DNA from: Malacoraja senta
Taxonomy: Eukaryota
NCBI GenBank assembly: GCA_038087875.1
Contig: JAXLNO010004592.1
Span: 186,001 to 250,000, forward strand
Reading direction: 5' to 3'
Length of the DNA: 64,000 bases
The notes under the pieces are model-generated. The model saw only the letters and a program-made list of their open reading frames with translations. It did not search any database and was not told where the DNA came from. Below, one piece after another: positions 8,773 through 61,587 of the stretch (position 1 is the stretch's first letter; each line of letters starts with the position of its first letter). The translations under genes and the position numbers were made by a program.

Positions 8773-8838
8773 TTTTTGGATGAAAAACACAAACCATACC
8801 ATTAAGAGTAACTGCCGTAGGGAATTTATTGGACCAAG
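8773..8838 (+). CDS. Candidate 66-nt symmetric (phase 2-2) exon, FWMKNTNHTIKSNCRREFIGP
   Basis: Acceptor ttatcttcag, perfect donor AAG|GTAAGT, length a multiple of 3, no stop in the frame that joins exon 10757. Confidence 0.45.
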
Positions 8839-18774: not shown

Positions 18775-19260
18775 ATGGTGATCAACAAATTCAAAGCACT
18801 CATTGGAAGTTGTCATACTTCACAACCAACTCATCTGACATATACCCACTGCACAAACGATTTGTACGGAGCACAATACCAAAGAAAGACAAACAGGAGA
18901 AAAGTTTGCTGACTATCTACCAGAGAATGACAGAAGTAAAAGAAATACTACTGCAATGCGAATCTCTTGTTAAAGTGACCAATTATGTTCTGAGAGAAGC
19001 TTTGGGGAAAACTTTGGAGTTCTACCCACTTCCAACCTGTGATCAGAGGCTGAATAATCAGATTACCAAAGTTGATCCACTCATTCTTGTTAGGGTTAAG
19101 ATAAAACCACAGTTACTTTACCAAGTCTTACACTTCCTGAAAGAGCTAGACTGGCTGGTGGATGCTCATCTAGCAAAAGCGTTCTACACTGTGAAAAAGC
19201 TAATGGTTTTTAAGCAAGAAATGATATTGGGAAAGACAAGTAAAACCAATAATGAACATG
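18775..19260 (+). CDS. 486-nt symmetric (phase 1-1) exon: luminal stalk with NSS sequon, furin-type KRFVR/S site and predicted helical domain
   Basis: Strong acceptor tttctgttcttcag|, donor ATG|GTATGT, 162 codons with no stop, phase matches exon 10757-11109. Confidence 0.72.
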
Positions 19261-25490: not shown

Positions 25491-25538
25491 TCTTAAAATG
25501 GCTGAAAAGGAACAGGACCCACAGAAAGTCCTTTAAAG
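25491..25538 (+). CDS. 48-nt symmetric (phase 1-1) basic exon VLKWLKRNRTHRKSFK; read-through of its donor gives a terminal exon ending at stop 25591
   Basis: Acceptor tttgtttttatag|, donor AAG|GTAGAG, open in the phase-1 frame. AATAAA at 25745 and 25774. Confidence 0.5.
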
Positions 25539-36730: not shown

Positions 36731-36871
36731 TGGATTGCCCAGATAAGGCCCCATATTTATTACCCTGGAACCCTGGACATCATGAAAATAAGAAGGTTAA
36801 GATTGGACGGAGAATGTTCCTAAAACTGGAGTCTTCTGCCTCGCTACATTCCATTATTATAGAGAACGGGG
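36731..36871 (+). CDS. CEMIP2/TMEM2-like hyaluronidase family protein, exon (start of G8 domain)
   Basis: tctctcttag| VDCPDKAPYLLPWNPGH...SSASLHSIIIENG |gtaagt; matches the CPD..WNPG start of the G8 domain in the CEMIP family. Confidence 0.92.
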
Positions 36872-37146
36872 GTAAGTTTAATTTGATAAATGTCTTTCAT
36901 ACTTGTAAACAATTCCCATATCTAACTGTTTTTCTTCTTTGGGGCTCTGTTTTATGCATAGGTTTTCACATTCCTTCCTGACAGAATAGATGCTACCTTT
37001 ATTTACAGTTGGATAGTACGGGTGATGCTAAATGCATCTGAGTTTGGGATTATTTTTGTGATGGGATTTCTGTTCAAGGGTAGAGCGGGGTGGTAAAATC
37101 ACCCCTGGTGACCATCGGTGACCTTACTATTGACATTATTTTGCAG

Positions 37147-37705
37147 GTAAACTCGTGTTCAACGATGCGCCGAAATCCCCTATCGCTCTGAAAGCCCGCT
37201 ATATTCTGATCAGGAACGGGGGCGAGTTGCACATCGGAGCGGAAAAATGCCCCTATATTTCCAGCGCCACTATTACTCTCTACGGAAAGTCGACAGATGC
37301 ATTAAACGTGGAGCATTTTGGTCAGAAGTTCATTGGCGTGGACAAAGGTGGTGTTTTGGAATTGCACGGAAGGAAAACCTTGTCTTGGACATTTTTAGCC
37401 CAAACTCTCTACCCCGGTGGCTTGCAGTCTGGGGCTTACCGCTTTGACAGGTACTGGGGCAGCAGGGGTATCAACATCAGGGTGATAGATGCCGGCACGG
37501 CCAAGGTGCTCGCAGCCCACCGTTTCGACACTCACCTCTGGGCGGATGAGAGCAGGCGGCTGCAGGAGTTCTTACGCCGCCAACCCAGAGGGCGAATAGT
37601 GGCCATCGCTGTCGGAGACTCGGCCGCCAGGAGACTGACGCTGTCTGCCAGGAATGACCTGAGCGAACTGCTGGGGAGCAAAGAGGCGATGTATCTGGGC
37701 TACAG
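37147..37705 (+). CDS. CEMIP2-like exon (G8 domain and first GG domain)
   Basis: ttgcag| GKLVF...YILIRNGGELHIGAEKC...RFDTH...ESRRLQEFLR...IVAIAVGDSAA...LGY |gtgagc. Confidence 0.95.
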
Positions 37706-38534
37706 GTGAGCCAGCTCGGATCGTGCATGGCCGCACCGCCGCGCTCCCACTGCGTTTTGAGGAATGTGTTTACATTTTAAATCCAGTTTACTTTCAACAG
37801 ACAGTAAGACGCGTCCCTGTCGTTTACTGCTTTAATTCAATTCGCGTGCTAGATTAAATCTAATCCGGTAAACGAGGCTTTCCGTTTGCTCATTTGGGGC
37901 GGCAGTTTTTACCCACGTTAATTACCCTCTTACCACTGTTTGCCTGCGTTTATAACTGTGTGACAACAAGATGGAGGAAACCAGAGGCCGGGGCATTCCC
38001 TATTCCTCACATGCAGTCGGAAACGTTGCTTGACGTGGAAGGTATCGATTATCTTGTCAACTGGGGTGAGATTTTCAACTCGCAGGTCCTTTAGCAGATT
38101 TGGATCAATGCCAAGGGTACACATTCGCTGAAGTACATTTTAATGATTGCAATTGGAACCACCATGGACAGCTCCCCGGGTCCTTTCTCGGGCGACTGGT
38201 CAGATTGGTTGCAAAGTGAGAGTAAAACGCAAAGTGCTGGAGCTACTCAGCGGGTCAGATAACATTTGTGGAGGGAATGGACAGGAGATGTTTCCTATGG
38301 GGACCCTTCCTCGGTTTCCTCCTCCCTCCACCAGCACAATAAGTTTTGCTCAAGATTCCAGCATATGCGGTTACCTGTGTCTCTAAAAAAAAAGACCATA
38401 CTTGAAACCCATAATGTGTATGTTTATATAGTTCAAATTATGTATTCATTTGTTTCATTCAAGCATATTTGCCATTGTAAATCAATCACAGTGGCAGACA
38501 ATTTCATTATGATCTTTGCCAATCTTGACTTTAG

Positions 38535-38698
38535 GCAACCATGGGCTGCGATTGGAGTTCTTGGTGAATTGTTTGCTATGGAAGACAAACAACTGTATCA
38601 GCCTAATGGGTCAACTGGTATGGCTATAGTAAGAAGAGACTTTCAGACATATGATGGGATTCATTTCACAGTCACTGCTTTCAGTGAGTGGGTGAGAG
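38535..38698 (+). CDS. CEMIP2-like exon (end of GG domain)
   Basis: tttag| RQPWAAIGV...DGIHFTVTAFSEWVR |gtaagt; phases 2 in and 1 out are consistent. Confidence 0.92.
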
Positions 38699-40819
38699 GT
38701 AAGTCTAATCAGCAGTTTTGTGTTTTTGAGGTTTACATTAGGTCTTTTTTAGGGTCACTACTATAGTCTGCTAAGAACCATAGACGCATGTAAGCGGAAG
38801 GCCATACGATTATAAGACATGGAAGCAGAATTAGGCCATTTGCCCTGTCGAGTTTGCTGAGCCATTCGATCATAACTGATCTATGTTTCCCTCTCAACCC
38901 CCATCTCCTGCCTTCTCCCCATCACCATTGACACCCTTACTAATCAAAAATCTATCAATTTCCACTTTAAAAAAATATCTATTGTACAGGTATACCTGAT
39001 TCTCAATTCTGCCTTTTCTCCCTTCACTGATTAAGTAAAAACATATTTTCTTTGTAGAAGAACACAAGCATTTATGTAAACAATTGAGAAACGTAATTGA
39101 AGATATTCAAAGCCAGGAATAATTGGAATTTATAAAAATAACGAAGGTTGAGGAAAAATATCAAAAAGGGGGTGGCTTGCTGGGTGTGGTGGATGGGCTG
39201 ATGGCATCATGCTGTATTTCTTTGATTATAACTATAAGAGTAGAGAGGTTAAAGTTTGGTTATGTAGAGTATTGGCGAGACTACATCTGGGTACTATGTG
39301 CCATATATGTCTCACTTATTTAAGGAAGGATCTATGTTGGAAACAATTCCAAGAAGGTTTACTTGAAGGATTCCCAGCATTGGTGGGTTGTCTTGTGAGG
39401 AAAGTTGGACAAACTAGGCTTGAATCTGCTGGAGAGTAGTAGACTGGGAGGTGACACCACTGGTGCATAAGATGACGGAGCGAATATGGTGAAGATGTTT
39501 CTGCAGTTGTTATCATTGGGATTTTTGGCAATGTCCTCCACGGTGTAGACAATGCGGGGGGGGGGGGGGGGGGGGGATGGTTTGCTGTATCTGTCTTGTT
39601 TTCTGACATTAATTTCCCAGCCACATTCTCCAAAGGTACTGTGATGACCTAAACCACATCTTTTAAAAATATAATCTCCATAGAAAGTTAGTTTTAACAT
39701 TGTGCGTTTCCCAATAACTCATTTTTGTTCCCTATCTTATGAGAACTTACACCACTGATTACTGAAAAATTCCAAGTGTAAGAATAGATTGAAAACCAGT
39801 TGTTGCACAGAAAACAGATGTAATAAATGATACTTTTTTTCTTGGTTGAATGGATATAACTTTTCAATTATCCCAGGGATATGCTCTTGGTCCTACGTTA
39901 GTCACTATTTATGTTAATGACCTAGAGGCGGGGGTCGGATTTAAGGTATCAAAGTTTGCCATTAAGACAAAAATAGATCGAAGGGCATCTTGTGATTTGC
40001 CTACTTTGGAATTTAGAAGAATGAGGACTGATCCTTATTAAACATAAGATTGGAAGGAGGCGTGATATAGAAACACAGAAAATAGGTGCAGGAGTAGGCT
40101 CTTCAGCCCATCGAGCCAGCACCGCCATTCAAATTGATCATGGCTGATCATCCAAAAGCAGTACCCTGTTCCTACTTACCCCCCCATATCCCTTGATTCC
40201 TTTAGCCCTAAGAGCTAAATCTAACTCTCTTGAAAACATCCAGTGAATTGGTCTCCACGGCCTTCTGTGACAGAGTGACAGGGTAGATGTCAGTGTGATC
40301 ACTTGTTGGAGAATAGCTTCAAAATAAAGAGTGAGTCATTTAGAACAGATTTGCATTTAAATTTCTTCTCTGTGAGAGTGATAAATCTCTGAGATTCACT
40401 GACCCAGAGAGTTTTAGCAGCTAGCTCATGACAAGTAGTTCACTTGAAGAGGTAAAGTTTTGGAGAATTTGAGGGCTCTGGCTATCTGGCACAGAGGAGT
40501 TGAGATTTGGTTTTTGGATCGAACATTCTGCATGACATTTCTGAAGCAGTTGTCTACAACTCAATAGTTTTTTTCTATTATAAACTAAAAATTCAACACT
40601 GAACAGCACACATGTGGTTATAGTGAAATATATCATATGCAGGCTGCTATTGATAACTGGGCTTAAATTCACATGGATAGTGTTATTCAAACATGTTGGT
40701 TGACAGTGTTATTGAACTAGATAAGCTTGGGGAGATAAGAATGAGAACTGACTTGTCACAAGTGAATCGGACAGTCATATAGTGCAGGAAAGGAAAGGAA
40801 ACAAAAAAAGATCATTGTC

Positions 40820-41111
40820 CAGGGTGGCACAGTGGTTACAGCACCATGGACCCAGGTTTAATCCTGACTATGGGTTGCTGTCTGTACAGATATTGTACAT
40901 TCTTTCTATGACCGTATGTGTTTTCTCCAGGTGCCTCCCATACTCTAATGTCGTACAGGTTTGTAGGTTAACTGGCTTTTGGAAATTGTCCTTAGTGTGC
41001 AGGATAATCTTAGTGTGTACAGGATGATCGCTGGTAGGCGCAGACTCGGTGGGCTGAAGGGCCTGTTTCAACGCTGTATCTCTAAAGTCTAAAGCAAAGT
41101 CTAAAGTCTAA
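40820..41111 (+). mobile_element. tRNA-derived SINE
   Basis: Head ggtggcacagtgg, tail gggctgaagggcctgtttc...(ctaaagt)n. Confidence 0.78.
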
Positions 41112-41238
41112 TCATATTGCTGTACCATTCTCCATCTTTAAAGGAAAGCAATTGCATAACGTATTTTTTCTTTCTAATATTTATTTTCTTAATGTATGCC
41201 TTTTGTGCTTTTATAACATTGTGTTATTTATTCCACAG

Positions 41239-41424
41239 GTGTCCCTCACTGTGGCTTTCGTGTGGATGTGTCAAATGGTGTTATTCTTAATTTAATGGAT
41301 GATGCCTCAAGCTGGTTGCCTGGTGATCAAATAGTCATTGCAAGTACTGATTATTCTATGCATCAGGCAGAAGAATTTGATCTCCTTCCCTGTCCTGGGT
41401 GTAATATTTATCAGATTAAAATTG
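41239..41424 (+). CDS. CEMIP2-like exon
   Basis: ttccacag| GVPHCGFRVDV...SWLPGDQIVIASTDYSMHQAEEFDLLPC...QIKI |gtaaga. Confidence 0.93.
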
Positions 41425-42379
41425 GTAAGAACTACGAATCTACAATAATTTTGAGTTTATCTCTTTTTAAAACTTTATCTCAAGGATTCTATGGATCAAC
41501 ACTTCGGATTTCTTTTACTCTGTGGATTTAAATTGTGCAATGCTATTCAAGGTTTATCTGGGGACATTTCTGATATGCAATCTGTTTCCTGTCTTTTTTA
41601 CTGTAACAATAAATGTAGACTGTATGTTCAGAATTTAAAGTGTAGAAAGCATACTTTATTGATGTTCAATTTTGCTCAACCAATTTGAATTCCCAACACT
41701 GAGGGATTAGACACAAAATGCTAGAGTAACACAGGAGGTCAGGCAGCATCTCTGGAGAAAATGAATAGGTAACGTTTTGGGTCGCAACCTTTCATCGGAC
41801 CTGAAATGTTACCTATTCTTTTTCTCCAGAGGAGCTGCTTGACCCATTGAGATACTCCAGCATTTTGTGTCTATCTGCGGTATAAACCAGCATCTGCAGT
41901 TCCTTCCTACTTATTCTGAGTGATTAGATATCCTTTCATTTTGCTTCCATGCTGAGCCTTTACCTGGCTAGATTAGAGTTAGTGATCTCAACAAACGGGA
42001 ACATTTGAATTGCCTGCACAGATTAACACACAAAAATATATTTTTCCATTGGTAATGAGTATATCAACACTGAACAAGAGAAGAGTGTTCTCTGATAAAC
42101 CTAGCATGTTGCACAACTTATAGTTTATTGTTTCAGAAGGAACTGCAGATGCTGGAAAATCGAAGGTAGACAAAAATGCTGGAGAAACTCAGCGGGTGAG
42201 GCAGCATCTATGGAGCGAAGGAAATAGGCAACGTTTTGGGCCGAAACCCTTCTTCAGACTGATTATAGTGTCTTGTGATAGTTATCATATGATCAGTTTC
42301 CTGTGGTAGGTGGATAAATCATCCCTGAGCTTTCTTATTAATGAGATTGACTCCAATGTGTTACCTGGTGCACAAGGTT

Positions 42380-42770
42380 GCAGAGAGGTTTACCTTGTCA
42401 GAAGTGTTTGTATCCTTTCCATGTCCACTCTATCTAAGCCTTTCAATATTCAGGAGGTTTCAACGTGATTTCCCCCCTCCCCCGTCCTTCTAAACTCCAG
42501 CAAATACAGGCCCAGTACCTTCAAATGCTCCTCATACATTAATCCAATCGTCCCCGGGATCATTCTTGTAAACCTCCTCTGGACCCTCTCCAACGCAAAC
42601 ACATCCTTCCTCAGATGTGGGGCCAAACAGCTCATAATATTCCAAATGTGGCTTCACACCACCTTATAAAGCCTCAGCAATACATCCTTGCTTTTATATT
42701 CTGGTCCCCTCAAAATGAATGCATTGCATTAGCTTTCCTTACCGCTGACTCAACCTGCAAATTACTCAGA
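42380..42770 (-). mobile_element. CR1 LINE fragment
   Basis: LERVQRRFTRMIPG...LEFRR motif. Confidence 0.8.
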
Positions 42771-44315
42771 GTCTCAGAATAAGGAGATGCATATTTAAAA
42801 CAGAGGTGAGCCTCTTGCCACAGAGAACTGAGAGCAGAGTCCTTCGGGTGTATTTACTGTAATGTTAGAATTTGTTGATGAAGAGAAGGCAGCATAGATT
42901 TAGGAAATCTTGGATCAGTCCTGAACCTTTTCAATGACAAAGCGGACTTTGGAGGGTGGGGAAGGCGGAGGGGGGAGCTGAATAGTCTACTACTATAGTT
43001 GCTGATGGTCAAGCATGAAAGTTAAAATACCAACCCTCCTCCCCCTAAAAAAACCCATCCTGTATTTCCTAAATGCTTGTTAAATATCTGCATGTTATTT
43101 CTACCATTTCCCAGCTGCCCCCTGGGATCTCAGACTTCCCCTCTGGAGTCTTAAATCTGTCTACGCTTATTAACTCTAGCTGTGAAGTCACCACCTACTG
43201 CTTGCTACTTGTTACAGCCTCTTACATTAACTTCATTTCATTCCTTGATCACCAAGATTATATTCCTACCTGCTATTTTTCTTTTGCTTCTGTGGATCAC
43301 GTACTTTTAGTTCCTGCTCTCATTCTTGCAAATTTGCCTCCATTATGATTTGACCTCCAAATTTAAATTTCAGCCAGCAATTTGTTAATTTCATCCACTT
43401 TGCTTCTTATTCTATGCTTTTTTAAAAATAATGCTTATTTGGATTGCACACTTTTAGTGTTTTATCATTAATTGTTTTCATTCTTAGCATACTTTCTAGT
43501 CTACGTTTATTTTTAACCTGCAGTGCCTAGAAGCACCACCTCTAATTCTCAGCTAACTTCCCTGAGGATTTGGATCAATTTTTATTACTAACACTACATG
43601 GGTCATTAAAATGTCATGAGTATGTGCAAAAGATCAATAGCAATTTATACATTCTAGTTGATATTTAACTCGAGGGAACTGCAGCACAAGGCAAAGGAAG
43701 TTGTGCTGCAGTTTTCCAAAGCCTTGATTTGACTGCAGCTGACTACCCCTCTCTTGGTAAAAACAAAGTGCAGTTCAAATTTGCATGATGTGTTAAATAT
43801 AGATAAATGTTTGCTCAGACTTGGATTGCATTCCCTGAAACTGAAGGATAAGGAGTGATTAAATTAAAATGTTAAGATGTTGGGCACCAAGGATAGAAAG
43901 AGGAGATATCTGTGATGATTGGGAAATCTAAGTTTAATACATATAATCTAAAAATTAGACCCAAGCATTTCAAATTTGACCACTTCTGCATTTAAATTAT
44001 GGTAGAAATCTTTTAACTTTATCCATAAGGATTATTGCTTGATCAGTTGTTAAATTAAAATCTGAAATGGATAGATTTTTGTTTCTAAAAGTAATGGAGA
44101 GAAAATAGACTGAATAACTTGAACTTTTTCCAATATTCCTAAAGTTATTGACTGTAGTAAAGTTGATTGGCATCAAATCAACACTTGTTGAGTTGTTCTC
44201 TGTACTCTTTACAATCTGCTGTAATCATTGGGGCTTTTCAAATAAATGTCTTAAGTTGCTGGTGATATGCCATTTCAATGAGTGGGTAGTTTTGAAAAAT
44301 AATCTTTCATCATAG

Positions 44316-44485
44316 GCAAGCCACGTTATCTCCATATGGGTGAAATTGTAGATGGAATAGACATGAGGGCTGAAGTTGGACTTCTAAGTAGAAACATCCT
44401 CATAAAAGGAGAAATGGAGGACTCCTGTTACGGACAAAACTTCTGCCACTTCTTTAGCTACGATACATTTGGTGGACAGATAAAG
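44316..44485 (+). CDS. CEMIP2-like exon
   Basis: catag| GKPRYLHMGEIVDGIDMRAEVGLLSRN...YDTFGGQIK |gtaagc. Confidence 0.94.
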
Positions 44486-45204
44486 GTAAGCATTGTTATT
44501 GAAGGTCTTTCAGCATTGTTTAGATAATATTAATTAGAGGTAAAGCAAATCATGTATATTTGGTCTCTGGCCAAAATACACACTGTTTATTGTGCCTTGT
44601 GGATTTTTCAAAATTGATTTAGGGTGAGAGGGAGGAAATTTCAGTAGGATGAAAAAGGTGTTTTTTTTCCCACAGAGGGATTGAATGAGCTGCCAAAAGT
44701 GGTAGAGACAGAAAAAAAATCACAATGTTTAAAGAAGCCATTGGGTGGGCACTTCGATAGAAGGAGTAGAGCCTAATGCAGGCAAATGGGATTAGTATAG
44801 ATTGTGTCACACTTGGTATGGATGAGTTGGGCTGAGGTGTCCTTTTCTGTGTTGTACTGTTCTATGGCACTAAATGGCAGGAAAATGGTGCAGTGAACCT
44901 ACTGTCAACTTTCTGCTTTTCCTAGATTGGCAATGGCTTCCCAACCAATGCCCTGCCCCCCCCCCCCCTTCAAAGCCATACAGAGTGGTTTAAAGCTCTG
45001 TCTTCTGTTCTACTTCTATCTAGAGTAAGTGTCTTAGGAATTTGAGGAAATTTCTGTCATGCCAGAATATTTCAACTTTTGTAGACTGTATTTTTCTTGA
45101 ACATACCAATCTCTCCATGACTCGAGTGTATTTTCAAAGATTTGGTTCTCAAATCTATCTCAAGTACATAGGGAAGAACTAATTTCATTACCTTGGCTTG
45201 GCAG

Positions 45205-45414
45205 ATCCTAAGAAACTTTGCCTCGGTTCACTTGTCTGGCGTAGAATTGACGAACATGGGCCAGCAGATACTTGGGAGTTACCCAGTACACTTACACCTG
45301 GCTGGAGATGTGGATCGGAAAGGCGGCTACAATCCGCCAACTTATGTGGACAACCTATCCATACATCACTGTTTCTCGCGATGTGTGGCTATACATAGAA
45401 CAAATGGTTTGCTG
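45205..45414 (+). CDS. CEMIP2-like exon (beta-helix/PbH1 region)
   Basis: ttggcag| ILRNFASVHLSGVELTNMGQQ...HLAGDVD...SIHHCFSRCVAIHRTNGLL |gtacgt. Confidence 0.94.
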
Positions 45415-45774
45415 GTACGTGTATCATTCCACCCGACTCTCTAATTTTAACCAAACTAATTCATCAGCACATTCTACATGTTTTCTCATATGTGTAACCA
45501 GCAAATGCTAATGGCAGATTCGGTGAGTATGATATGCACAGTTACTCCTTCAGACCCTATTTGGTGCATTGTGATATATGAAAGCAAAATGTTCTACTCT
45601 TTTTGTTAAAACTTTCCCTCCATCCACCTCCATCCCAAAACATTGTGAACATTGCACTATTTTCCACAGTTTATTTAAATAGGGAATATTCTTAAATTTC
45701 CAATTCTAACCAATCAAAACTGAATTTTTGAGCTAATTTTTCTGAATTATCCTGTAGCAGATGTTTTAACAACA

Positions 45775-46295
45775 ATTTGAGGAAGGACATTCTTGCTGTG
45801 GAGGGAGTGCAGCGTAGGTTCATGAGGTTAATTCCCGGGATGGCGGGACTGTCATGATGAAAGAATGGAGCGACTGGGCTTGTATTCACGGGAATTTAGA
45901 AGGATGAGAGGATATCTTATAGAAGCATATCAAATTATTAAGGGATTGGACACGCTAGATGCAGGAAACTTGTTCCCGATGTTGGGGGAGTTCAGAACCA
46001 GGGGCCACAGTTTAAGAATAAGGGGTAGGCTATTTAGAACTGAGATGAGGAAAAACTTTTTCACCCAGAGAGTTGTGAATTTGTGGAATTCTCTGCCTCA
46101 GAAGGCAGTGGAGGCCAATTCACTGGATGCATTCAAACGAGTTAGATAGAGCTCTTAGGGCTAGCGGAATCAAGGGATATGGGGAGAAGGCAGGAACGGG
46201 GTACTGATTGTGGATGATCAGCCATGATCACATTGAATGGCAGTGCTGGCTCGAAGGGCCGAATGGCCAACTCCTGCACCTATTTTCTATGTATC
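45775..46295 (+). mobile_element. CR1 LINE 3' end
   Basis: EFRRMRGYLIEAY...FFTQRVVNLWNSLP plus the 3' tail. Confidence 0.88.
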
Positions 46296-47069
46296 TAAAC
46301 AACAAACCTGGTCTCATCTAATTAGATATTCTATTCATTCCTCCCTCCCTCCCTCCAGCTTCTTAACTTAAAATGAACCATTTTAACTCTTTCCCAGTTC
46401 TGAACAAGGATCTCAGACCTAAATTATTCACTCTTTATGCAGATTCTGAGAATGCTATTTTTTTTTATTTGTAGTTTTTAACAGTAGACGGAGTAAATCA
46501 GAATTTCAACTATTTCATTCATTTCAATGGTGAAGAAAATTTGGGTTTACATTTGTGATCACTGTATTTGTGCTGCAGATTAAATCAACATTTATACCTC
46601 CATATGTTCTCAAACTGCTGTGCTTGAAGCCATACTGTACCTTGGTACTGGTGACAATAAACTAAACTAAATACTGGGAGTGTACCCAGAGCTCTGGATA
46701 AATGATCATTTGAGGCTTGTTACATCTTGTGCAAACTGCCTTGTTAAGCTTGAATGGGTTACAGAGGGCGTTTTCCTAAAAATGTAGAGAATTACATGTT
46801 GACAAGGAGACTGATCATTTGAGAACTATGTTGATTTACATTCATTGCTCCATTCTAAACAAACATAGTGCATGCCTTTGCCCAATACGCCATGACTTTC
46901 AACTGGCTAGCTTACACTGATATCAAATGTACATACAAATTGGAAGAAGTAAGCTATTTGGCTCCCCTCAGCTTGCTGTGCCATTTAATAAAATTGTAGC
47001 CAATGCATCCTTAATTTTATTTATTTTATGTTTATTTCCCTAATTCAATCTAATCTTTTAATTCTATAG

Positions 47070-47275
47070 GTCAAAGATACAATAGGGTATGACACGCTTG
47101 GACATTGTTTCTTCCTGGAGGATGGTGTGGAGCAGAGAAACATACTGTATCACAACCTGGGTCTCCTTACCAAGCCAGGCACCATCCTCCCTTCTGACCG
47201 CAATGAAATTATGTGCATTTCAATCCGTAATCAAGTTTGTGGAAATTATATTCCCATACCAAGTAATGACTGCAT
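47070..47275 (+). CDS. CEMIP2-like exon (PbH1 repeats)
   Basis: ctatag| VKDTIGYDTLGHCFFLEDGVEQRNILYHNLGLLTKPGTILPSDRN...NDC |gtaagt (translated manually; frame not in the ORF track). Confidence 0.94.
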
Positions 47276-47579
47276 GTAAGTTAAACTTGGAATTTCTCCC
47301 ATTGTTTGAGTCACTATATTGGCACATTTTCTGGTCATTTCTGATTAGAAAAAGATTCAATGTAAAATGAGGGGATATCAGTCTATCATGGAAAGTGAAA
47401 TACAAGCACTTCAAGTATGAAGATTTTGACCATCATTCATATAATTACTGACTCAATGGCACAACCTCAGATCAGATGAGATGAGCCCATGTTTACATGT
47501 GAACCGACTGCAAAATATCCATGCATGCATATCTCAATATAAAAATCCCAAGGTTGCTGCAGGCAGTTCACCACCGATA

Positions 47580-51402: not shown

Positions 51403-51472
51403 GGCTGTCACAACATTTTGGATATCCAATCCTAACAACCACCTCATCAACAATGCAGCAGCTGGTGCCCAG
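51403..51472 (+). CDS. CEMIP2-like exon
   Basis: tttgcag| (M)AVTTFWISNPNNHLINNAAAGAQ |gtaagg. Confidence 0.93.
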
Positions 51473-54400
51473 GTAAGGCAATACTTGGTTGACTTGGAAA
51501 ACCAGTTTATACAGACAGCAGCCTGGGATTTCGATTTCCCTCCTGGGATAAATAAAGTTCTATCGTATCGTAGATATTCTTTTTCAGAGTCATTCTTGTA
51601 ACGTTCCCCCAGCACCCCTACCAGCAACATGTCCCTAACATTACTGATACTATTTAGTCTGGAAATCATGACCTGGGAATCATGTTTTTTTTAATCTGAC
51701 GGGCTGCTGTCTGTATATATTTGTTTTGTAAATCTGCCCAGTTGTTATACAGGCTCCATTTATACATGAAGTGAATTAGATTTGTTGTCCTTTATTTTGG
51801 CTTGATATTTTAGTTAAAGTCGTGCAGTAAACAGGATCACAGAGAGTGATGTTCATATGATCATTATGAACTTCTGATCATAATGTTCTCAACATGGGCA
51901 TGGACACTTGTTAAAGCACCAGAATAGTAATCCAGAGATTAGCGATATCTATCAGAAGGGAAAACCCACCAGTAAGAAAATTAAAATTTCTTAATAAATT
52001 TGAATCTGAAAAAAGAAACAACAAATATTCTTCATAATGATGTTCTTGAAAACTACTGGATTGTTATAAAAAAAAAAAACCCATCTGGTTCACCAATGCC
52101 CTTGAGGGGAAAGCTATCATTCAGATGTGATTTGCAGGTGACTCCAGGCACACCCCATATGGTTAACTCTTAATTGCCAATGAAGTGGCCCAGTAAATCA
52201 TTCGGTTCCATTACAGTCAAACTTTAAATGTATGTTCTTGTACACATAATGATACAGAAGGAGAACCGTCGCTTCCTTGCCAAGCCCCTGGGAGCAATTA
52301 GTCCCTTCCCTCTCATTTCCCAGTAGCCCTTCAAATTATTCTCTCTCAAACATTCCTATCAACTTTTTCTTCGCTTCTAATTGCCAGTAAGTTACTGTAG
52401 CCAATTAACCTACCAGTATTTCATTAGAACCTGGGAGGAAACTGGGTCACTCAGTTGAAACTGGTGGTCATGGGGAGAGTGTGCCATCTCCACACAAACA
52501 GCATCCTAGGCCAGAATGGAACCAAGGTTCCCAAAGCTGTGAGATAACAGCACTGACTGCTGTGAAATGGTGTCTGTGGTAGAAAATTGGATGGGACAGC
52601 CTGGCATTGACTCGAGTATCGCAATGTCTAAGAAACATGTAGACAGGTTTTTCATGGATAAGACAGGTGGGCCAAATTCAGGCAGGTGGGACTACTGTAG
52701 ATGGGAAATGTTGGCAGGTGTGGGTAAGTTGGGCAAAAGGGCCTGTCTCCATGCTGTAAGACACTATGACTATTAAATCTGGATACAGCAAATGGCTCCC
52801 AAAAACATCAGACAAACACCTCCTCACAAAGATTTGCAGAGTGCATTGCCACTGACCATTCATTCAAAAACCCGACATAATCATACTTGCAGATTCATTC
52901 CTGGCAATGTACTAGATCTCCAACGCAATCCATGAGCATTATTATTAAACCAATCTTATTCAATGAGTAGAACAGTCTCACCAAAGACAAGAATTGATGC
53001 CACACCTCATAAATACACATGGCATCAGGACAGCCATGGACAAGGAAACCTCTTCCTGATTAGAACTTATCACCTTCACAATACCGTGGTGGTTAGTTTT
53101 GGTGTGAAGACAGGGCTTTGCACAAGGATTGTGCATTAATCGTTTCTACTAATAGGAGCATTGGCAGATCCATCTACTGCTGGTAAATGGTGAGGCATGG
53201 TCTAGGACGTATACGCAGTTATTTCAGTTTTGCCCTTCAGAACATGGCCTGGTCATTATAGTGATGCTACCTAATCACTTGGCTATGGATAATGAAATCC
53301 CTGCCCCCCAGAATACATTTGGTGCTCTTGCTATTATCAACGTTTCTCCCACCTCTGTCTAGTACACTTATAACATCAGCGTCTACCCGACAATATGAAA
53401 ACTGCCTTGCTGTGCTCTGTTTACAAAATGTAGGACAATCCCAACTGGCCAATCTATCTGTTCTCAATCATCTGGAAAGTGATGGGAGCTGTCATGGACA
53501 ATAGTATTATGCAACACTTAAATGCTGGTGCCAAGTTTGGATCTTGCCAAGGCAGCTTGACTTCAGGCCTAACCAAATATTGACCATCTATATTTGATCT
53601 TCTAGCCAAGCAAAACATCATTCATCCAGCCTGGAGCCCTGTTAGACACTTGCCAGCTTCATGGGACTTATACTTTCAAACTTGAGTCTATCCAATCCCT
53701 TCTAATTTAACAGGACTCAGTTTGGTGAACCTTTGTGTTGTTTTATTTTCTATGTCACATATATATTTTCCTGGGTAAGGTGACCAAAGGTGTACTGCTC
53801 CAAGCATGGTGTTTTTATTTAATTGATTGCAAAATACAGCATGGAAACACGCCCTTTGGTCTACTGAGTCCACTCTGACCATCAATCACCCGTTCACCCT
53901 GGCCTCAGCAAGAATCTGTATTCATGCCATTTTATTAATTTTGGATGAGGTTGCCCAGTGGAGAGCTCTTCTATTCTTCAAATTCATCCACGTGGTTACA
54001 TGGTAGGGCTTCCATTTAATGTCTTGCCCAAAAGGCAGCTTCCCCTCATTTCTGTAATTCGGTATCAACCTGAGATTTTGCTGCTCAAAACACTCAGTCT
54101 TTGTTTCCAAGATGCAAGAACTATATCGCTGAGCTATGACTTATTTAAAATGAGGATTAACTTATCCCAAACAATCGTTTTGTAGCTGGCTTACCAATTT
54201 ATGAAAATTCCCAGTCACTGTTACTTAATTCTTACCATGTAAATAGTGTGTTGATGTCAAATACCACCATCGCCAGGAGTGAATTAATGATATAGTTATC
54301 ACAGATCTAATTGGTCTGAAACCTGCAAAATATACCAGTACCCAAAAAGATTCCAAGCAGTAGTTTACAGACTTTAATATATTAATTATTTTATTCAACT

Positions 54401-54769
54401 TGTGGTCATGAAACAGGGCAAGTTTTGAAATGGGATTTGTGGCATGGCATCTGAAAAATTACCCTGAAAGTTGTTAAGGTGGTGAAAACTTATGGTGATA
54501 TCTTTTGTGGAGTGGTTGTCTGGGGGATAGGGGAATGTTTGCACATAATTGAAGTAAAACAAAAAGTGCTGGAAACACTCATCTGGTCAGGCGGCATCCA
54601 TGTAGAGAGAAGCAGATTTAATGTTTCAGCTCGGCAACCTTTCATTAGAACTGGGGGGAAAAAGCAACCTACAGGGTCTAGTGAGACAATGGGAGAGATG
54701 GATAGGACAAAGGTGAAGCCAGAGTTGTGTAGTGATATGCTGTTAACAAAGTTGCCCCATTGTTGGCCT

Positions 54770-55390
54770 TCATAACAAGAGAATTTCGGTATAGGAGTAA
54801 AGAGGTTCTTCTGCAGTTGTATAGGGCTCTGGTGAGACCACATCTGGAGTATTGTGTACAGTTTTGGTCTCCTAACTTGTGATTGAGGCAGTGCAGCGTA
54901 GGTTCACGAGATTGATCCTTGGGATGGCGGGACTGTCATATGAGGAAAGATTGAAAAGACTAGGCTTGTATTCACTGGAGTTTAGAAGGATGAGGGGGCA
55001 TCTTATAGAAACATATAAACTTATAAAAGGATTGGACAAGCTAGATGCAGGAAAAAATTTCCCAATGATGGGCGAGTCCTGAACCAGGGGCCACAGTCTT
55101 AGAATAAAGGGGAGGTCATTTAAGACTGAGGTGAGAAAAAACGTTTTCACCCAGAGAGTTGTGAATTTATAGAATTCCCGGCCACAGAGGGCAGTGGAGG
55201 CCAAGTCACTGGATGGATTTAAGAGAGAGTTAGATAGAGCTCTAGGGGCTAGTGGAGTCAAGGGATATGGGGAGAAGGCAGGCACGGGTTATTGATAGGG
55301 GACGATCAGCCATGATCACAATGAATGGCGGTGCTGGCTCGAAGGGCTGAATGGCCTCCTCCTGCACCTATTTTCTATGTTTCTATGATA
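54770..55390 (+). mobile_element. CR1 LINE 3' end
   Basis: EAVQRRFTRLILGMAGLSYEERLKRLGLYSLEFRRMRG and a 3' tail nearly identical to 45775-46295. Confidence 0.9.
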
Positions 55391-56458
55391 GACTAATGCT
55401 GGCAGTCAGCAAGAAAGGAAATGGAGAAAGAGACAGGTAAAAGCTATAAACTGGAGGCCAGAGCAGTTGCAGAGAACTTAAACCCAATGGAAAATATTGG
55501 AAATTGGGTAACGCCTCTGGAGAGTGAAAAACTTGGTTAATATTGCAGATGATTTAGCCAATTCTCATACAGGGAAAGCTTGAAATTGTAAAATTTTATC
55601 TGGGGTCCCAAAGTCTGCAAAATGTTTAGGTGGAAGATAGACACAAAAAGCTCAAGAAGACTCAGTCTGAAGAAGTGATCGACCCAAAACGTCACCCATT
55701 CCTTCTCTCCAGAGATGCTGCCTGTCCCGCTGAGTTACTCCAGCTTTTTGTGTCTATTTTCGGTTTAAACCAGCACCTTCAGTTTCTTCTTACACAAATG
55801 TTTAGGTGGGACTGGTGTTGTTCTGCTGGCCCTTTTGAATACATCTACACAAGTGTAACTTGTTGGTGATGAAACTTTGATCTCAAATGGTCATTTTTAC
55901 CTCTCCATAGATACTGCCTGACTTGCTGAGCATATCTGGTATTTTTTTTAATTTAAGAATTACAATGGTTTAGCTCACCACAACATTCTCAAGAGAAATT
56001 ATGGAACAACAATAAATGGAATTGCAAATAATACCTTGATTCCATAGAAATACATGTTTATGAATGTGTCTATTCAGTGTGTGGCAAGTAGGCAGTTACT
56101 TTGTATGAAAGATTACTGCTGCAAAATACTTTGCATAAGTCCGGGAACAGTCCTTGCATGTTTAATAGATGCAAGGGCATTTTATTCTGCATCTATTTCA
56201 GATGTTCAGCATTTGCTGATTTTTCAATTTTAATTTCTGCATACATTTGGTCCAACCTACAAAAAGCAATAATTAACCTCAAGCCCTATTTTAAGCTGGT
56301 TCTCCTCTGGGTTGTATGAATTCATTTAAATGTATAGGTTAGTTTAGTGTTTGAATATTTCTACTGAAGCACAATTATGCTTAGAGAGTGTTTTGTTTAA
56401 AAAATATATGTTGTTTTTCCTGGTTTTAACGTTTCTTGTTTAATCTCTTCCTTTCCAG

Positions 56459-56587
56459 GATGTGGGGATATGGTATATTTTCCACCGTAACCCTACTGGA
56501 GAATCTGTGGGTCAATTTCCAGATGGCCAGTCAGAGTTTACCCCCTTGGGAATATTTTACAACAACAGGGTACATTCTAACTTCAAG
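56459..56587 (+). CDS. CEMIP2-like exon
   Basis: ctttccag| DVGIWYIFHRNPTGESVG...TPLGIFYNNRVHSNFK |gtgtgt. Confidence 0.93.
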
Positions 56588-56756
56588 GTGTGTATACTCT
56601 GCTACAATAAGAGCATGTAACAATGATTTATTTTGCACATATTTTTTATTTCAAAATAAGATTTCCAATTATTGTTGTGAACTATTAAAAAATATAGCCT
56701 GTAGGCACACTAGTGTGTTCTATGCCTAGGTTTAGATTTCAACCCAATTTTTTTAG

Positions 56757-56970
56757 ATTAGTTTGGAAATGCAACATGGAAACAGGCCCCTTCAGTCCAC
56801 TGAGTCCACTCCAGCTATCGATCACCTGTACACTACGTCATCCCACTTTTGCATCTTACACACTAGGGGCAATTTACAGAAGGCAATACACCTACAAACC
56901 TGCATGCCTTTGGAAAGTGGGAGGAAACCGGAGCACCTGGAGAAACCCCACGCAATCACCGGGAAAACAT
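56757..56970 (-). mobile_element. tRNA-derived SINE, reverse orientation (another at ~52255-52562)
   Basis: Reverse complement of the SINE core (ggaaaccggagcacctggagaaacccc). Confidence 0.7.
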
Positions 56971-58711
56971 ACTAACTGGATATCTTGCTGAGAGATGAGT
57001 CACGAACATTAATGTCAAGGGTAATGTCAGATCTCAAAAGTTCCGTGCAGTGGACGCTCCCTACATTATTGTCCATTCCTCACTTACAGTTGGTATACTC
57101 TTGGGTGAAGAAGGGTCTCGACCTGAAACGTCACCCATTCCTTCTCTCCAGAGATGCTGCCTGTCCTGCTGAGTTACTCCAGTATTTTATGTCTACCTTC
57201 GATTAAACTAGTATCTGCAGTTCTTTCCTACTCTTGGGTGTTTAGACCATTGATTGTCTTATTAACAGTGTGTGTTATCGGTGTTGGATAGCCTATGCTC
57301 TTCCTCCTGTTTTTTGGGTCAAGTGTTTTGTGTTCTGAGCCACCTTATATTTAAAGAGTTGCTTTTTAAAATCACAGTGGTGTTTCTAATCCCAAAACAC
57401 CGTACAGTCGAGGTTGGTTAACTCTTGGATCCTCAATTGATTCTTACAAGCCTGCCCTGGTACGTCTTGGTAGAAAAGCCCAAAGTCTTTCAAAAGGTGC
57501 TAATTAAAGCTCTTGTTGTTTGTGGGGTCATCAGATTGTACGTAAGGTGCTGTCTGAATAGTCATCTTTTGTGCCGTACTTGGAAATTCCCAAGTTATTT
57601 GTTTCTTGTGGCTGTATTGCTTTGTGCCTGGTGGTTTTAGGTAATGCTGAATCCAACTGACATCGCCTTTGTGGTTTCCAGTTTGGAGAGTGATGTAATC
57701 AAACTGCTGCCTATGACAAGATCATGGGGAATTCCTTAAAGCCTTGTGATTGTCTCTGACAAAATAGGTTGTTGATTTTGACAAGTCTGCGCTTCAAGCA
57801 ATTTGTCAGGAGGATTCTGTTGGATTGATCTTTCCCTACTCCCTCCTTGTAAATTCTGTCTTGCTACCAGATTGTCTCCAGCATTGAGGTTATCCAGGAA
57901 GATTGCTTTGTCTCATATTTTCTAACAGCCAGGGCGTTTTCATGATTTCTTGAGCAGAAGTCCTCTTTGGGTTTGCCCGTAGTTCCCAATGTGGGGGGGA
58001 CATCCGTGCTGATGACCCTAGAGTATTAGTTCCATGATTGAGCTAGTGGGAGAGGCACGCGGCATTCACATACTCTACAGGGGTAATCTTTGAGATACCA
58101 ACCTGACACATTTTCCACTAGCATTGGTAGCATTCCATTAACTTCCCTAATTACTTGCTTTCTAGCCCATTGAGAATCATGCATAAACACGCCGATCTCG
58201 GCATTTCAGAACGCGACTGTCTCTCACTATTCAGATAAAATTCTCCTCCTTTATTTTTCTTGCCAAAATGGTCAGTTTCCCATTTTCCCACATTATAATC
58301 CACTTGGTAGAACACCAAATCCATCTCTAACCTTTCTCTGTCTGCTTCACGACATCTCTGTGCCATCATCAAATTGAGCTGTTTTAGCTTTTGGTATCGT
58401 GATCCAAGTCATTTACTGTGTTTGCATAGTAAACAAGAATTATGGCACCAACACCAATTGCGTTGGCACCTTGCTCATTGCATCTTGCCAATCAGAAAAA
58501 GCCTAGTGTGCCTAGTGTTTTCTGCTAGTCAACTCACTTTTGCTGTATATTATCTTTTTGAAATACCCAATCCTCCAGAAAAGAAGAGGGAGTTTCTGTA
58601 GTTGTTAATTCTACTCAGTGTTACTAATGTGTGTTTTATTATAGTGCCAGGCTGGAATGTTGGGATTATTATCTCCAGTGATTTATTGATTTCTGGTCTC
58701 CTTTCCCGCAG

Positions 58712-58797
58712 GCTGGACTTTTCATTGACAGTGGAGTGAAGACAACCAAATGCAATGACAATGATCCCAGGGAAATTCTTGCACTGGACTTTGCAAG
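58712..58797 (+). CDS. CEMIP2-like exon
   Basis: ttcccgcag| AGLFIDSGVKTTKCNDNDPREILALDFA |gtatag. Confidence 0.92.
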
Positions 58798-59674
58798 GTA
58801 TAGCGGAATTAAATATTTCAGAAGATTGATTTACTTCTGTGTAAAGGTCTTTCCATAATAAACACTGGGGCTAGTTTATTGAACTAGTAATGCTTGCTAG
58901 CATGATATCACCCTGGGAAATTTGATATAAACTCTATGCAAATGAATCCAACTTATAAGCATTAATTTTTCCAATGCTTGAAGCATTTTTAAATTGAACG
59001 AAACAGATTCCATGTAAGCATTATTTCAGGAGAAATTATGCAAGTTGTGTTCACTGGTGAGTTTTGATGCTTATTTGCAGCCTCTTCCTTGTGGGAACTA
59101 AATAGCTGATTACTTCCCCTGCAAGATCTGGCTATTTGTTAGGAAATGATTTCATTCAGCCAATATTTTTTCGTGCTTGTTTTGATAACATACAGCTTCC
59201 TTACTCTGTCAAAGCAGGGTCAAATGCTGGAGATTGGTGTTTGTTTTTGGCATTGGGTATTATTGTTTGATACCACCAGTTGCTAGTAAGAGGGAGGTAA
59301 GAGTGTGGAATTAAGGGAGAAGGTCAGCGTTGGGGAATCTCTCAGTGGGTTGACGCTTTAAAAAAATAGGAAGGGGGAAAGGAGAACTCAATAGCTGGGA
59401 CGTTGTCAACTGGGAGTCAGTAATGAAGATTGGACCAAGAAGCCATTAGATATATTGAGGTGCATGGGGCAGAATTAACTGTTGGGTATTTTGAAGATTG
59501 GGATTGGAAAGAGTGTAGAGACAGAATGATAAAGAGTTGTTTCTCACTACTGGCATTGACAACATAGTAATGAAGCTGGGTTAGGTCAGTTGTCAAGGGA
59601 ATGAGATAAGCGAGGTTCTTGACTGATGACCCAATAGAGAGCTTGATAAAATTATCACTTGGTGTAATGGAGAC

Positions 59675-59900
59675 TTGCAGCACAAAAACAGGCCCATCAA
59701 CCTAACTCGTTCATGCCAATCGGGATGCCCCATCTAAGCAAGTCCAATTTACCCTTGTTTGGTTTATAGCCCTCTAAATCCTTCCTATCCATGTACCTAT
59801 CCAAATGTCTTTTAAATGTTATTGTACCTAGTTCAACTACTTTCTCTGGTAGCTTGTTCCATGTACTAGCCACCCTGTTTGAAAAGGTCATTCCTCGGGG
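59675..59900 (-). mobile_element. CR1 LINE 3' end (similar copy at ~2030-2370)
   Basis: WNKLPEKVVE.GTITFKRHLDRYM motif. Confidence 0.8.
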
Positions 59901-60199
59901 ATGATACCAAGTAAACAAAAAATATTCTGCTTTAAAATTCACAGTTTCTTCAGAATATCTTGCAACAATACGAGTAAAACTGCATTGTTCTAGCGATAAG
60001 TGCCAACATACAGTGGAGTACAGATAGATATATCTGCTGCTGTGAAGCTTAAATAATAAATAATGAATATTGTGGGTTCACATGTAATCAATAATGTGTA
60101 TAAAATATTGAATCATTCTCTTACCATTCTGGCATATATTGCCAGCAACAGCCATTGGATCTTCTAATAACATGCTCCATGTGCAGCAAGAAGAGTCTA

Positions 60200-60750
60200 A
60201 AGGGCCTGTCCCACGGGCATGCGACTCCATGCGGCAAGCGCGACCTAACCGGAAGCGGGGGCCGCGCGGAGGTCGCAGGGCCGGTCCCACTTCGATCGCC
60301 GGAGCCGTATGGAGTTGTGCGGAGCTGGTCCACACATGGCGCGGGGCTCCGAAAAACTGACACTGTTCAAAAATTCCTCGCGGCAACGGCCTGCCGCCCC
60401 GCAGCCGCATCGAGGCCGTGCGCGCCGCATCGACGGCCGTGCGCACCGCCTCGAAGCCGTATGCAGCCGCCTTAAGGCCGTGCGCACCGCCTCGACGTCG
60501 TACGCAGCCGCATCGAGGCCGTATGCACCGCCTCAACGGCCGTGCGCACCACCCCGACACCGTACGCACCGTCTTGACGTCACTCGACCTCCGCGGGGCC
60601 CCCGCTTCCGGTTTGGTAGCGCTTGCCGCATGCAGCCGCATGCTGGTGGGACAGGCCCTGTCCGGGGATCACTCGACCTCCGTGCGGCCCCCCGCTTCCG
60701 GTTAGGTCGCGCTTGCCGCATGGAGTCGCATGCCCGTGGGACAGGCCCTT
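60200..60750. mobile_element. GC-rich non-autonomous DNA transposon (MITE) with ~75-bp terminal inverted repeats
   Basis: aagggcctgtcccacgggcatgcgactccatgcggcaagcgcgacctaaccggaagcggggg at the left end and its reverse complement at the right end. Flanked by TA. Internal ~20-bp tandem units. Confidence 0.85.
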
Positions 60751-61125
60751 TATTTACCATTCAACTGTTGTTTTTATTATTTATAATCTCCAATTTTCTT
60801 GATGTTTACACTTTGCTGCAAACATATTTGGCATAATATGCAATGATTGCTTCATTTTATTTTGGCTGAAATCATGTAACAAGAAAAGATTTGTCATTTA
60901 ATGATTTATTTATATGGCTTTAAATATCTTATGCTCAACTGATAATGAAGGATTAATAATTAATTAGTGTTTAAAACTGTTGTATTTAGCCTTCTGTTCC
61001 CGCTGAATCTTGGTTTCTGATGTCTATTCATTCCTTGGGCCTCAGTGTCTGCCTTCTGTTTTCAATAGTTTATGTCTCAAGAACCGTGACAGATCTGTAA
61101 CTTCTGCTCTGTATCTTTGACATAG

Positions 61126-61257
61126 GTTTCGCCCTCATCAAAATGCTGACCCAAGGCAGCCACGTGTTCCTGCTGTTATTGATGGTCTTATAGCTTTTAA
61201 AAACAATGAGCAAGGAGCTTGGGCTAGAGGGGGAGACATTATATTCCGCAACTCTGG
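61126..61257 (+). CDS. CEMIP2-like exon
   Basis: catag| RFRPHQNADPRQPRVPAVIDGLIAFKNNEQGAWARGGDIIFRNS |gtaagt. Confidence 0.93.
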
Positions 61258-61551
61258 GTAAGTTCTGTTATATGCTGGAACATGTCTTTGCAACAGAAAA
61301 TATCTTTGATATATATAGAAGCATTGAATGAATTACTAGAGATGGTGTATCTCAGTCACTGAGCTAGAGGTTCCACTGCTGATGCTGCATGCACGGTACT
61401 GAAGATATAATGCAGAGGTAATTACTACGGCTATACAAAACAATTAGCTGATCACATATGTTTCACAAAGGATTTGATATTATGTTGCTTGCTGTATAAT
61501 GTAAGATGCATGAAATTCTGGAATGTGACCCCATTCTCTTTGCTTCTGTAG

Positions 61552-61587
61552 GTTCTCCGATAATGGGATAGGTCTGACTCTAGCAAG
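61552..61587 (+). CDS. CEMIP2-like 36-nt microexon; gene continues beyond the window
   Basis: ttctgtag| (G)FSDNGIGLTLA(S) |gtaatc, matching the family motif F.DNGIGLT.AS. Confidence 0.9.

Follow-up and report, generated by a model that had tools for sequence, protein, structure and literature searches.

A third, TMEM2-type member of the CEMIP family beside ABHD17C in a skate genome, very probably an ancient gene of jawed vertebrates

Hyaluronan biology has been built around two G8-domain proteins, CEMIP (KIAA1199/HYBID) and TMEM2 (CEMIP2), and a 2024 review names only these two (PMC11275217). Here we analyse a stretch of 64,000 nucleotides from the skate Malacoraja senta (GenBank assembly GCA_038087875.1, contig JAXLNO010004592.1, positions 186,001 to 250,000 of the forward strand; hereafter the window), which carries on its plus strand a CEMIP/TMEM2-family gene with 16 coding exons in the window, from 8780 to 61587. 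Very probably, the window carries the 3' end of ABHD17C and the first 16 coding exons of the skate gene CEMIP2-like, a third ancient member of the CEMIP/TMEM2 family in jawed vertebrates; that degree of confidence applies to the full reading, including the history and function proposed below. The original prediction, made from the DNA letters alone, had suggested a TMEM2-type third paralogue on the ABHD17C paralogon, and this is borne out: the protein falls into a clade of its own, found across gnathostomes and placed as sister of CEMIP2 (100/100), and the gene order in duck, Hypanus and Leucoraja agrees.

The exon model combines a splice-site search with a tblastn comparison to P0252, the 'cell surface hyaluronidase-like' protein of Amblyraja radiata. 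AG/GT sites are found at all 16 exons, and the spliced model runs for 1011 codons with no stop; since the orthologues are 1583-1590 amino acids (aa) long, about 580 codons should lie past the window end. The largest open reading frame (ORF) of the region first singled out (37155-37706) has TMEM2-type proteins as its best phmmer matches and matches the human TMEM2 ectodomain structure (PDB 8C6I) with an E-value of 4.4e-57. When full-length relatives were used in tblastn, a plus-strand exon chain was found from 36.7 kb on, with further matches at about 8.8, 10.8, 18.8 and 25.5 kb. The match at 18.8-19.2 kb was first suspected to be a transposon piece fused into gene models, which was ruled out: it is the genuine conserved exon 3. 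The independent exon model reproduces exactly the coordinates given earlier for the start of exon 5 (36731), for intron 38699-41238 and for the end of the last exon in the window (61587), so that as regards the extent of the gene the end in the window stands and the start is corrected, coding exons 1-4 preceding 36731, from 8780 on. Among the skate proteins compared, the window protein is closest to Leucoraja erinacea isoform X2 (XP_055517168, P0528; 97.6% identity), followed by those of Amblyraja (96.8%) and Rhinoraja (95.2%), and it coincides exactly with none of the three. When the ectodomain is compared, CEMIP2 of shark, gar and echidna reaches 62-63% identity, the amphioxus protein 56.5% and CEMIP 53-54%.

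For the phylogeny, relatives were gathered by searches seeded with a bird CEMIP2-like relative, a hagfish CEMIP and a sturgeon CEMIP2, and two maximum-likelihood trees were computed, a quick one from 65 proteins and 1272 columns (LG+C20+F+G4) and a careful one from 45 proteins and 1257 columns; support is given as ultrafast bootstrap (UFBoot)/SH-like approximate likelihood-ratio test (SH-aLRT). In both trees the window protein lies inside the CEMIP2-like clade (100/100), with Amblyraja as its nearest relative (98% over 720 columns) and a terminal branch of 0.007, and CEMIP2-like is sister (100/100) to the CEMIP2 clade (100/100), outside which the window protein falls with 100/100 support. The CEMIP proteins of jawed vertebrates form a clade (100/99) that joins the lamprey and hagfish proteins (100/100). 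The species tree is mirrored within each of the three clades, cartilaginous fishes branching first. The protein thus sits inside neither CEMIP2 nor CEMIP but in a clade of its own, as the original prediction had anticipated. Its further suggestion, that the gene is the sister or the parent of CEMIP, fared less well: an approximately unbiased (AU) test rejects a clade of CEMIP2-like plus CEMIP (delta log-likelihood 56.9, p 4e-12; the tested clade was taken from that hypothesis and framed after the first tree was seen), and the parent part stands only loosely, in that a TMEM2-type ancestor at this locus may have given rise to CEMIP. The lamprey proteins of the CEMIP group (P0279, P0288) carry the Mucin2_WxxW domain by Pfam, and because lamprey and hagfish proteins group with CEMIP, CEMIP should predate the split of jawed and jawless vertebrates; it follows from the same grouping that the tandem split into TMEM2-type and CEMIP-type genes is older than the split between CEMIP2 and CEMIP2-like. 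The hagfish 'CEMIP' (P0022) has an insert of similar length but, unlike the lamprey proteins, no Pfam Mucin2_WxxW match.

Gene order points the same way. In duck, genes for ABHD17 (311 aa), CEMIP2-like (1497 aa) and CEMIP (1360 aa, with WxxW) follow one another on the same strand, and the stingray Hypanus has the same order ABHD17, CEMIP2-like, CEMIP. Leucoraja has CEMIP2-like (1590 aa), CEMIP (1364 aa) and then MESD on the opposite strand, in agreement with human 15q25.1, where ABHD17C, CEMIP and MESD are consecutive. By locus tags or contig data, the genes for CEMIP2-like and CEMIP also share a locus in Aldrovandia, Pogona, Discoglossus, axolotl, Hyperolius, Elgaria and Mixophyes. In the window, a C-type ABHD17 exon stands about 5.5 kb upstream of CEMIP2-like on the same strand; CEMIP is observed downstream of CEMIP2-like in Leucoraja, Hypanus and duck, and the window ends before that position. 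The ABHD17 exon shares 91% identity with its duck counterpart, which stands ahead of CEMIP2-like and CEMIP, and 84% with the stickleback ABHD17 ahead of CEMIP2. At the positions where duck and stickleback differ it has the duck state in 6/6, the other set being CQRPVEP..DVELYGQ..FVAHEL, and the neighbour is therefore ABHD17C; NCBIfam and ESM Atlas searches with the 83-aa exon gave nothing useful for the subtype. The CEMIP2 of stickleback is immediately preceded, on its own strand, by an ABHD17B-type gene encoding 295 aa (L004, 1-4571 and 10001-26383). This arrangement mirrors ABHD17C/CEMIP2-like, which argues that the gene pair, beyond the single genes, was duplicated. No gene was found within 10 kb downstream of stickleback CEMIP2, and goose CEMIP2 has no neighbour gene within 10 kb. 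Sharks have a separate CEMIP2 on a chromosome different from that of CEMIP2-like; in Heterodontus, the chromosome with CEMIP2, which is followed by a RabGAP gene, measures 212 Mb and that with CEMIP2-like 46 Mb.

The domains encoded in the window are those of the family, in the arrangement of TMEM2. Pfam finds G8 (3e-24) and ILEI, the GG domain (5.6e-18), in exon 6 and the CEMIP-type right-handed beta-helix further on, so that both hallmarks of the family, G8 followed by GG/ILEI and the beta-helix, are present in window exons; exons 7 and 8 have no Pfam match. The Leucoraja orthologue shows G8, ILEI, beta-helix, CEMIP_X (1192-1370) and a second ILEI, with no WxxW domain, and shark CEMIP2 likewise is without it; skate CEMIP (Leucoraja, P0366) has an additional Mucin2_WxxW domain at 326-409. 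As skate CEMIP alone of these proteins has it, the 'CEMIP-specific insertion' that the gene had been said to lack can be identified with Mucin2_WxxW. In Leucoraja CEMIP this region is encoded by extra exons (L002, 28785-28976 and 30293-30439). A tblastn search of the whole window with residues 280-445 of Leucoraja CEMIP found nothing in intron 38699-41238 and nothing elsewhere except exon 7 itself, and the reported direct joining of SEWVR to GVPHCGFRVDV is reproduced by the exon model, no WxxW exon being detected by tblastn or Pfam. In place of the signal peptide of CEMIP, the window gene encodes an anchor in exon 2: the sole strongly hydrophobic 19-residue window is at residues ~102-124 (Kyte-Doolittle mean 2.3), and the preceding KKRRR cluster suggests a type II anchor, as in TMEM2. 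The product would therefore be a type II protein with a cytoplasmic tail of about 100 aa, one anchor, a helical domain of about 190 aa and a TMEM2-type ectodomain in the order G8/beta-helix, lectin-like GG and CEMIP beta-helix; domain X and the second GG domain, predicted from the 97.6%-identical Leucoraja orthologue, would be encoded beyond the window.

Exon structure and single residues agree with this placement. The 559-nucleotide G8/GG exon is also a single exon in goose CEMIP2 (L003, 16260-16823), with subsequent exons of the same size, and the G8/GG region of skate CEMIP is split over three blocks; the comparison of intron positions thus joins CEMIP2-like with CEMIP2. The mixture of TMEM2-type and CEMIP-type motifs reported earlier is real: all the quoted motifs are present, and their assignment holds against clade consensus sequences, with IAVGDSAA, KDTIGYDTLGHCFFLEDGVEQRN and NNRVHSNFKAGLFID of CEMIP2 type and TLYPGG, WGSRG, Y670 in GKPRYLH and GLTLA of CEMIP type. 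In 291 alignment columns, each of the three clades reaches a consensus of 80% or more. All three clades are identical in 243 of them; CEMIP2-like agrees with CEMIP2 and not CEMIP in 35, with CEMIP and not CEMIP2 in 8, CEMIP2 agrees with CEMIP and not CEMIP2-like in 3, and all three differ in 2. The 8 CEMIP-like positions (residues 466, 551, 670, 793, 825, 907, 971 and 1010) are each isolated from the others, are fixed throughout CEMIP2-like from sharks to birds, and have the amphioxus state in 5 cases; no CEMIP-like tract was found in CEMIP2-like with sliding 50-residue windows. We take these CEMIP-type residues to be ancestral states that changed in CEMIP2, and not conversion tracts. Among the 35 columns common to CEMIP2-like and CEMIP2, 21 have the amphioxus state, and GDSAA is a shared novelty of the two, its counterpart being NDE(G/A)S in CEMIP, cyclostomes and amphioxus. 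Private changes at consensus positions number 3 in CEMIP2-like, 8 in CEMIP2 and 35 in CEMIP, which makes CEMIP2-like the most conservative of the three.

The gene is widespread in vertebrates. In the bird-seeded search, proteins with CEMIP2-like-type names came at 67-96% identity, followed by true CEMIP2 at ~65%. CEMIP2-like was found in birds, crocodilians, turtles, squamates, frogs, salamanders, coelacanth and lungfish, and also in sharks, rays, chimaera, sturgeon, gar, bowfin, bichir and eels, teleosts being represented among the CEMIP2-like matches by elopomorphs only. No mammal was among the CEMIP2-like matches of this search, in which all matches scoring above CEMIP2 were shown; the echidna CEMIP and CEMIP2 were both recovered. 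This is consistent with the predicted absence of the gene from human. CEMIP2-like was, we infer, lost in mammals and, apparently, in most teleosts, and would so be a clear case of the loss of an ohnologue from mammals.

CEMIP2-like has about 190 residues (exons 3-4) between anchor and G8 that have no counterpart in CEMIP2 or CEMIP, and the distance from anchor to G8 is about 200 aa across the clade. This juxtamembrane domain is kept from sharks to birds, with near-invariant C61 and C88 and a KP..LL..VL motif (alignment A1). AlphaFold2 predicts helices, with a predicted local distance difference test (pLDDT) score of ~90 over exon 3 residues 101-140 and a mean of 67. No Pfam family covers the domain, and the best that Foldseek found among PDB and Swiss-Prot models was at chance level (E 1.3 and 0.27, template modelling (TM) score <0.31). 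One may speculate that the domain serves as a stalk or as a partner-binding or oligomerisation module. In the ectodomain, R469, D477 and D490 of the window protein align to R265, D273 and D286 of TMEM2, and all three are kept; mutation of these GG-domain residues abolishes TMEM2 activity, but no activity was found for soluble human TMEM2, and the hyaluronidase activity of TMEM2 is disputed (PMC10206443). CEMIP2-like catalysis therefore cannot be assumed. By homology, the role of the protein may be to bind and depolymerise hyaluronan at the cell surface, as has been reported of TMEM2. We also consider it possible, though rather doubtful, that CEMIP2-like forms a third, non-redundant arm of hyaluronan turnover in vertebrates and that its private disulfide-bonded helical domain confers a partner-binding or clustering function; if this were true, its loss in mammals would be a real rewiring of extracellular hyaluronan degradation, and birds, frogs and sharks would be a natural system for testing whether the membrane-anchored member is a true hyaluronidase.

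We propose the following history from tree and synteny. In an early vertebrate, before jawed and jawless vertebrates separated, a TMEM2-type and then a CEMIP-type gene would have stood in tandem downstream of ABHD17. A block duplication would have produced ABHD17C/CEMIP2-like/CEMIP/MESD and ABHD17B/CEMIP2, the ABHD17B block having lost its CEMIP-type copy, and mammals and apparently most teleosts would later have lost CEMIP2-like. Several points weigh against the placement of CEMIP2-like as a third ancient gene with this history and function. Amphioxus (0.73) and Lingula (1.23), the invertebrates on which the root depends, have long branches, as does the CEMIP stem (~0.5), so that long-branch attraction could inflate support. 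Strict shared-derived columns, with amphioxus as polariser, are few: 4 for CEMIP2-like plus CEMIP2 and 1 for CEMIP2-like plus CEMIP. The block duplication is not assignable to the first or the second vertebrate genome duplication (1R or 2R). The joining of the exons and their expression in Malacoraja senta are predictions from DNA, and the C-terminal third of the gene, as well as the CEMIP and CEMIP2 of this genome, are read across from Leucoraja, Hypanus and sharks. Finally, as the activity of human TMEM2 is itself disputed (PMC10206443), the biochemical role of CEMIP2-like could be drawn by homology at most.

The alternatives to a third ancient gene differ in which of these data they accommodate. 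That CEMIP2-like and CEMIP are true sisters, born by tandem duplication after the genome duplications, with CEMIP evolving fast, gaining WxxW and losing its anchor, and with its basal place a long-branch artefact, would explain why the two genes are immediate neighbours on one strand, and it draws on the long CEMIP stem and on the amphioxus state of most CEMIP2-like/CEMIP2 columns. The idea is nevertheless improbable, given the AU test, the grouping of lamprey and hagfish with CEMIP (100/100) and the WxxW domain of the lamprey proteins, the balance of 4 to 1 in shared-derived columns, of which GDSAA versus NDE(G/A)S is an example, and the fused G8/GG exon common to CEMIP2-like and CEMIP2. The same tandem arrangement makes the two genes a suitable substrate for gene conversion, and the CEMIP-type motifs are real; the residue mosaic is even so extremely unlikely to have arisen in this way, with 8 of 291 columns CEMIP-like, all of them single, scattered and fixed clade-wide, 5 of these in the amphioxus state, and no tract in the sliding windows.

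A plain skate CEMIP2, the sole TMEM2-type gene of its genome and a neighbour of ABHD17B, would likewise have the TMEM2-type architecture without WxxW, and no skate or ray CEMIP2 is among the 120 matches listed in the sturgeon-CEMIP2-seeded search. This explanation is barely credible in view of the nesting of the protein in the CEMIP2-like clade (100/100), apart from the CEMIP2 of sharks, bony fishes and tetrapods, the presence of both genes on different chromosomes in sharks, the position of the skate and ray orthologues directly upstream of CEMIP (with MESD next in Leucoraja), the C-type state of the ABHD17 exon at all six diagnostic positions, and the 190-aa juxtamembrane domain not found in CEMIP2. 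Decay of the locus in this species, that is, a pseudogene in the making, could be entertained inasmuch as two thirds of the gene are visible in the window, but it is highly improbable for a sequence with 16 exons, canonical splice sites throughout and 1011 codons without a stop, a terminal branch of 0.007, 97-98% identity to other skates and conserved functional residues. The features of the window on which the preferred reading, a third ancient family member beside ABHD17C, is built are collected in Table 1.

Table 1. Features of ABHD17C and CEMIP2-like in the 64,000-nucleotide window of Malacoraja senta
Feature	Position	Strand	Basis
ABHD17C, last coding exon (C-terminal 83 codons and stop)	2984..3235	+	ORF; weak alpha/beta-hydrolase Pfam matches; duck/stickleback comparison
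CEMIP2-like exon 1, start codon, MKNTNH...	8780..8838	+	100% match to Amblyraja P0252 residues 1-20; GT donor
Exon 2, cytoplasmic tail and sole membrane anchor	10757..11109	+	tblastn; splice model; hydrophobicity maximum at residue 104
Predicted transmembrane segment, residues ~102-124, KKRRR before, putative type II	11001..11069	+	Kyte-Doolittle; positive cluster read from sequence
Exon 3, predicted helical juxtamembrane domain	18775..19260	+	alignment A1, sharks to birds; AlphaFold2 helices
Exon 4, basic linker LKWLKRNRTHRKSFK	25491..25538	+	100% match to P0252 residues 295-310; AG/GT
Exon 5, G8 start (PWNPGH)	36731..36871	+	tblastn; AG/GT
Exon 6, remaining G8 and first GG/ILEI lectin-like domain, R469/D477/D490	37147..37705	+	Pfam; 8C6I match
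Exon 7, ends SEWVR	38535..38698	+	splice model
Intron 7, site of Mucin2_WxxW exons in CEMIP, none here	38699..41238	+	tblastn of CEMIP WxxW region
Exon 8, begins GVPHCGFRVDV	41239..41424	+	tblastn; splice model
Exon 9, GKPRYLH, beta-helix start	44316..44485	+	tblastn; splice model
Exon 10, CEMIP beta-helix	45205..45414	+	Pfam CEMIP_beta-hel 7.5e-26
Exon 11, CEMIP beta-helix	47070..47275	+	Pfam CEMIP_beta-hel 2e-21
Exon 12	51403..51472	+	tblastn; splice model
Exon 13, CEMIP beta-helix	56459..56587	+	Pfam CEMIP_beta-hel 1.2e-9
Exon 14	58712..58797	+	tblastn; splice model
Exon 15	61126..61257	+	tblastn; splice model
Exon 16, 36-nucleotide micro-exon, FSDNGIGLTLA	61552..61587	+	splice model

Some further observations concern the non-coding parts of the window. 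Its composition is that of a vertebrate (~39% G+C), with debris of ORFs resembling long interspersed nuclear elements (LINE) in the long introns and no runs of N. The plus strand at 36597-36641 matches, at 93%, the exon with which the coding sequence of Amblyraja isoform X6 (P0518, 1289 aa) alternatively begins (MMSRSPFVHRTLVYTT); this isoform lacks both anchor and juxtamembrane domain, and no signal peptide is obvious in it. Intron 4 contains at 35298-35918 a G-rich minisatellite with a period of ~20 (unit GAGGGGTGTGGAGGGAGGT), which brings the GC skew of the 34-36 kb region to +0.53 and gives rise to spurious proline/histidine-rich minus-strand ORFs of 330-350 aa. GC-rich minisatellites with periods 21/41/62 and 90 at 60400-60749 in intron 14 produce long ORFs (187 aa at most) that overlap one another and occur on either strand, and these are not genes. 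Fragments of retroelement ORFs with the motif LERVQRRFTRMIPG / LGLYSLEFRRMRGDLIE lie in introns at 9375-9713 and 42450-42635 on the minus strand and at 45865-46149 and 54879-55082 on the plus strand.

The novelty that the original prediction implied for the gene was overstated, as RefSeq and UniProt already list it for more than 100 species, skates included. Literature searches brought up no paper describing the third paralogue; where papers speak of 'TMEM2L', they mean CEMIP under another name. Two putative orthologues surface in papers only as rows of expression tables, chicken LOC415478 for the shell gland (PMC6347800) and Xenopus LOC100491930 for placodal explants (PMC5035141). The finding is a modest discovery, that of a paralogue known to the databases on which the literature is silent: what is new here is its explicit placement by tree and gene order, together with the private N-terminal domain, the existence of the gene being already known. 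It matters in that a third paralogue, ancient, well conserved, anchored in the membrane and present in chicken, Xenopus, gar and sharks, may buffer or confound knock-out and knock-down phenotypes in non-mammalian models, and in that it clarifies the history of the family as a tandem pair formed before a block duplication and followed by differential loss.

Compared with known systems, CEMIP2-like is closest to the database entries named 'cell surface hyaluronidase-like', 'CEMIP2-like' or 'transmembrane protein 2-like' in RefSeq and UniProt (Leucoraja XP_055517168, Amblyraja XP_032906156), which are its orthologues, 95-98% identical among skates; these automatic annotations have the same architecture and gene order as the window gene, with no difference in kind. 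With CEMIP/KIAA1199/HYBID it shares the family, the domain set, the ancestral motifs TL[YH]PGG, WG.RG and GLTLA, and a place as same-strand tandem neighbour, whereas CEMIP is secreted, has a signal peptide and no anchor, carries, behind its first GG domain, a WxxW domain encoded by additional exons, has a G8/GG region split by introns, and forms its own clade with the cyclostome proteins. With CEMIP2/TMEM2 (PDB 8C6I) it shares the type II topology, the ectodomain order G8/beta-helix, GG/ILEI, CEMIP beta-helix, X and GG without WxxW, the exon structure including the single large G8/GG exon, and the position directly downstream of an ABHD17 paralogue. It differs from CEMIP2 in forming a separate clade since before the split of sharks and bony vertebrates, in lying on the ABHD17C/CEMIP/MESD block and not on the ABHD17B block, in its extra domain of about 190 aa from anchor to G8, which brings the protein to ~1590 aa against ~1381, in being missing from mammals, and in keeping the ancestral W466, Y670 and L1010 that were changed in CEMIP2.

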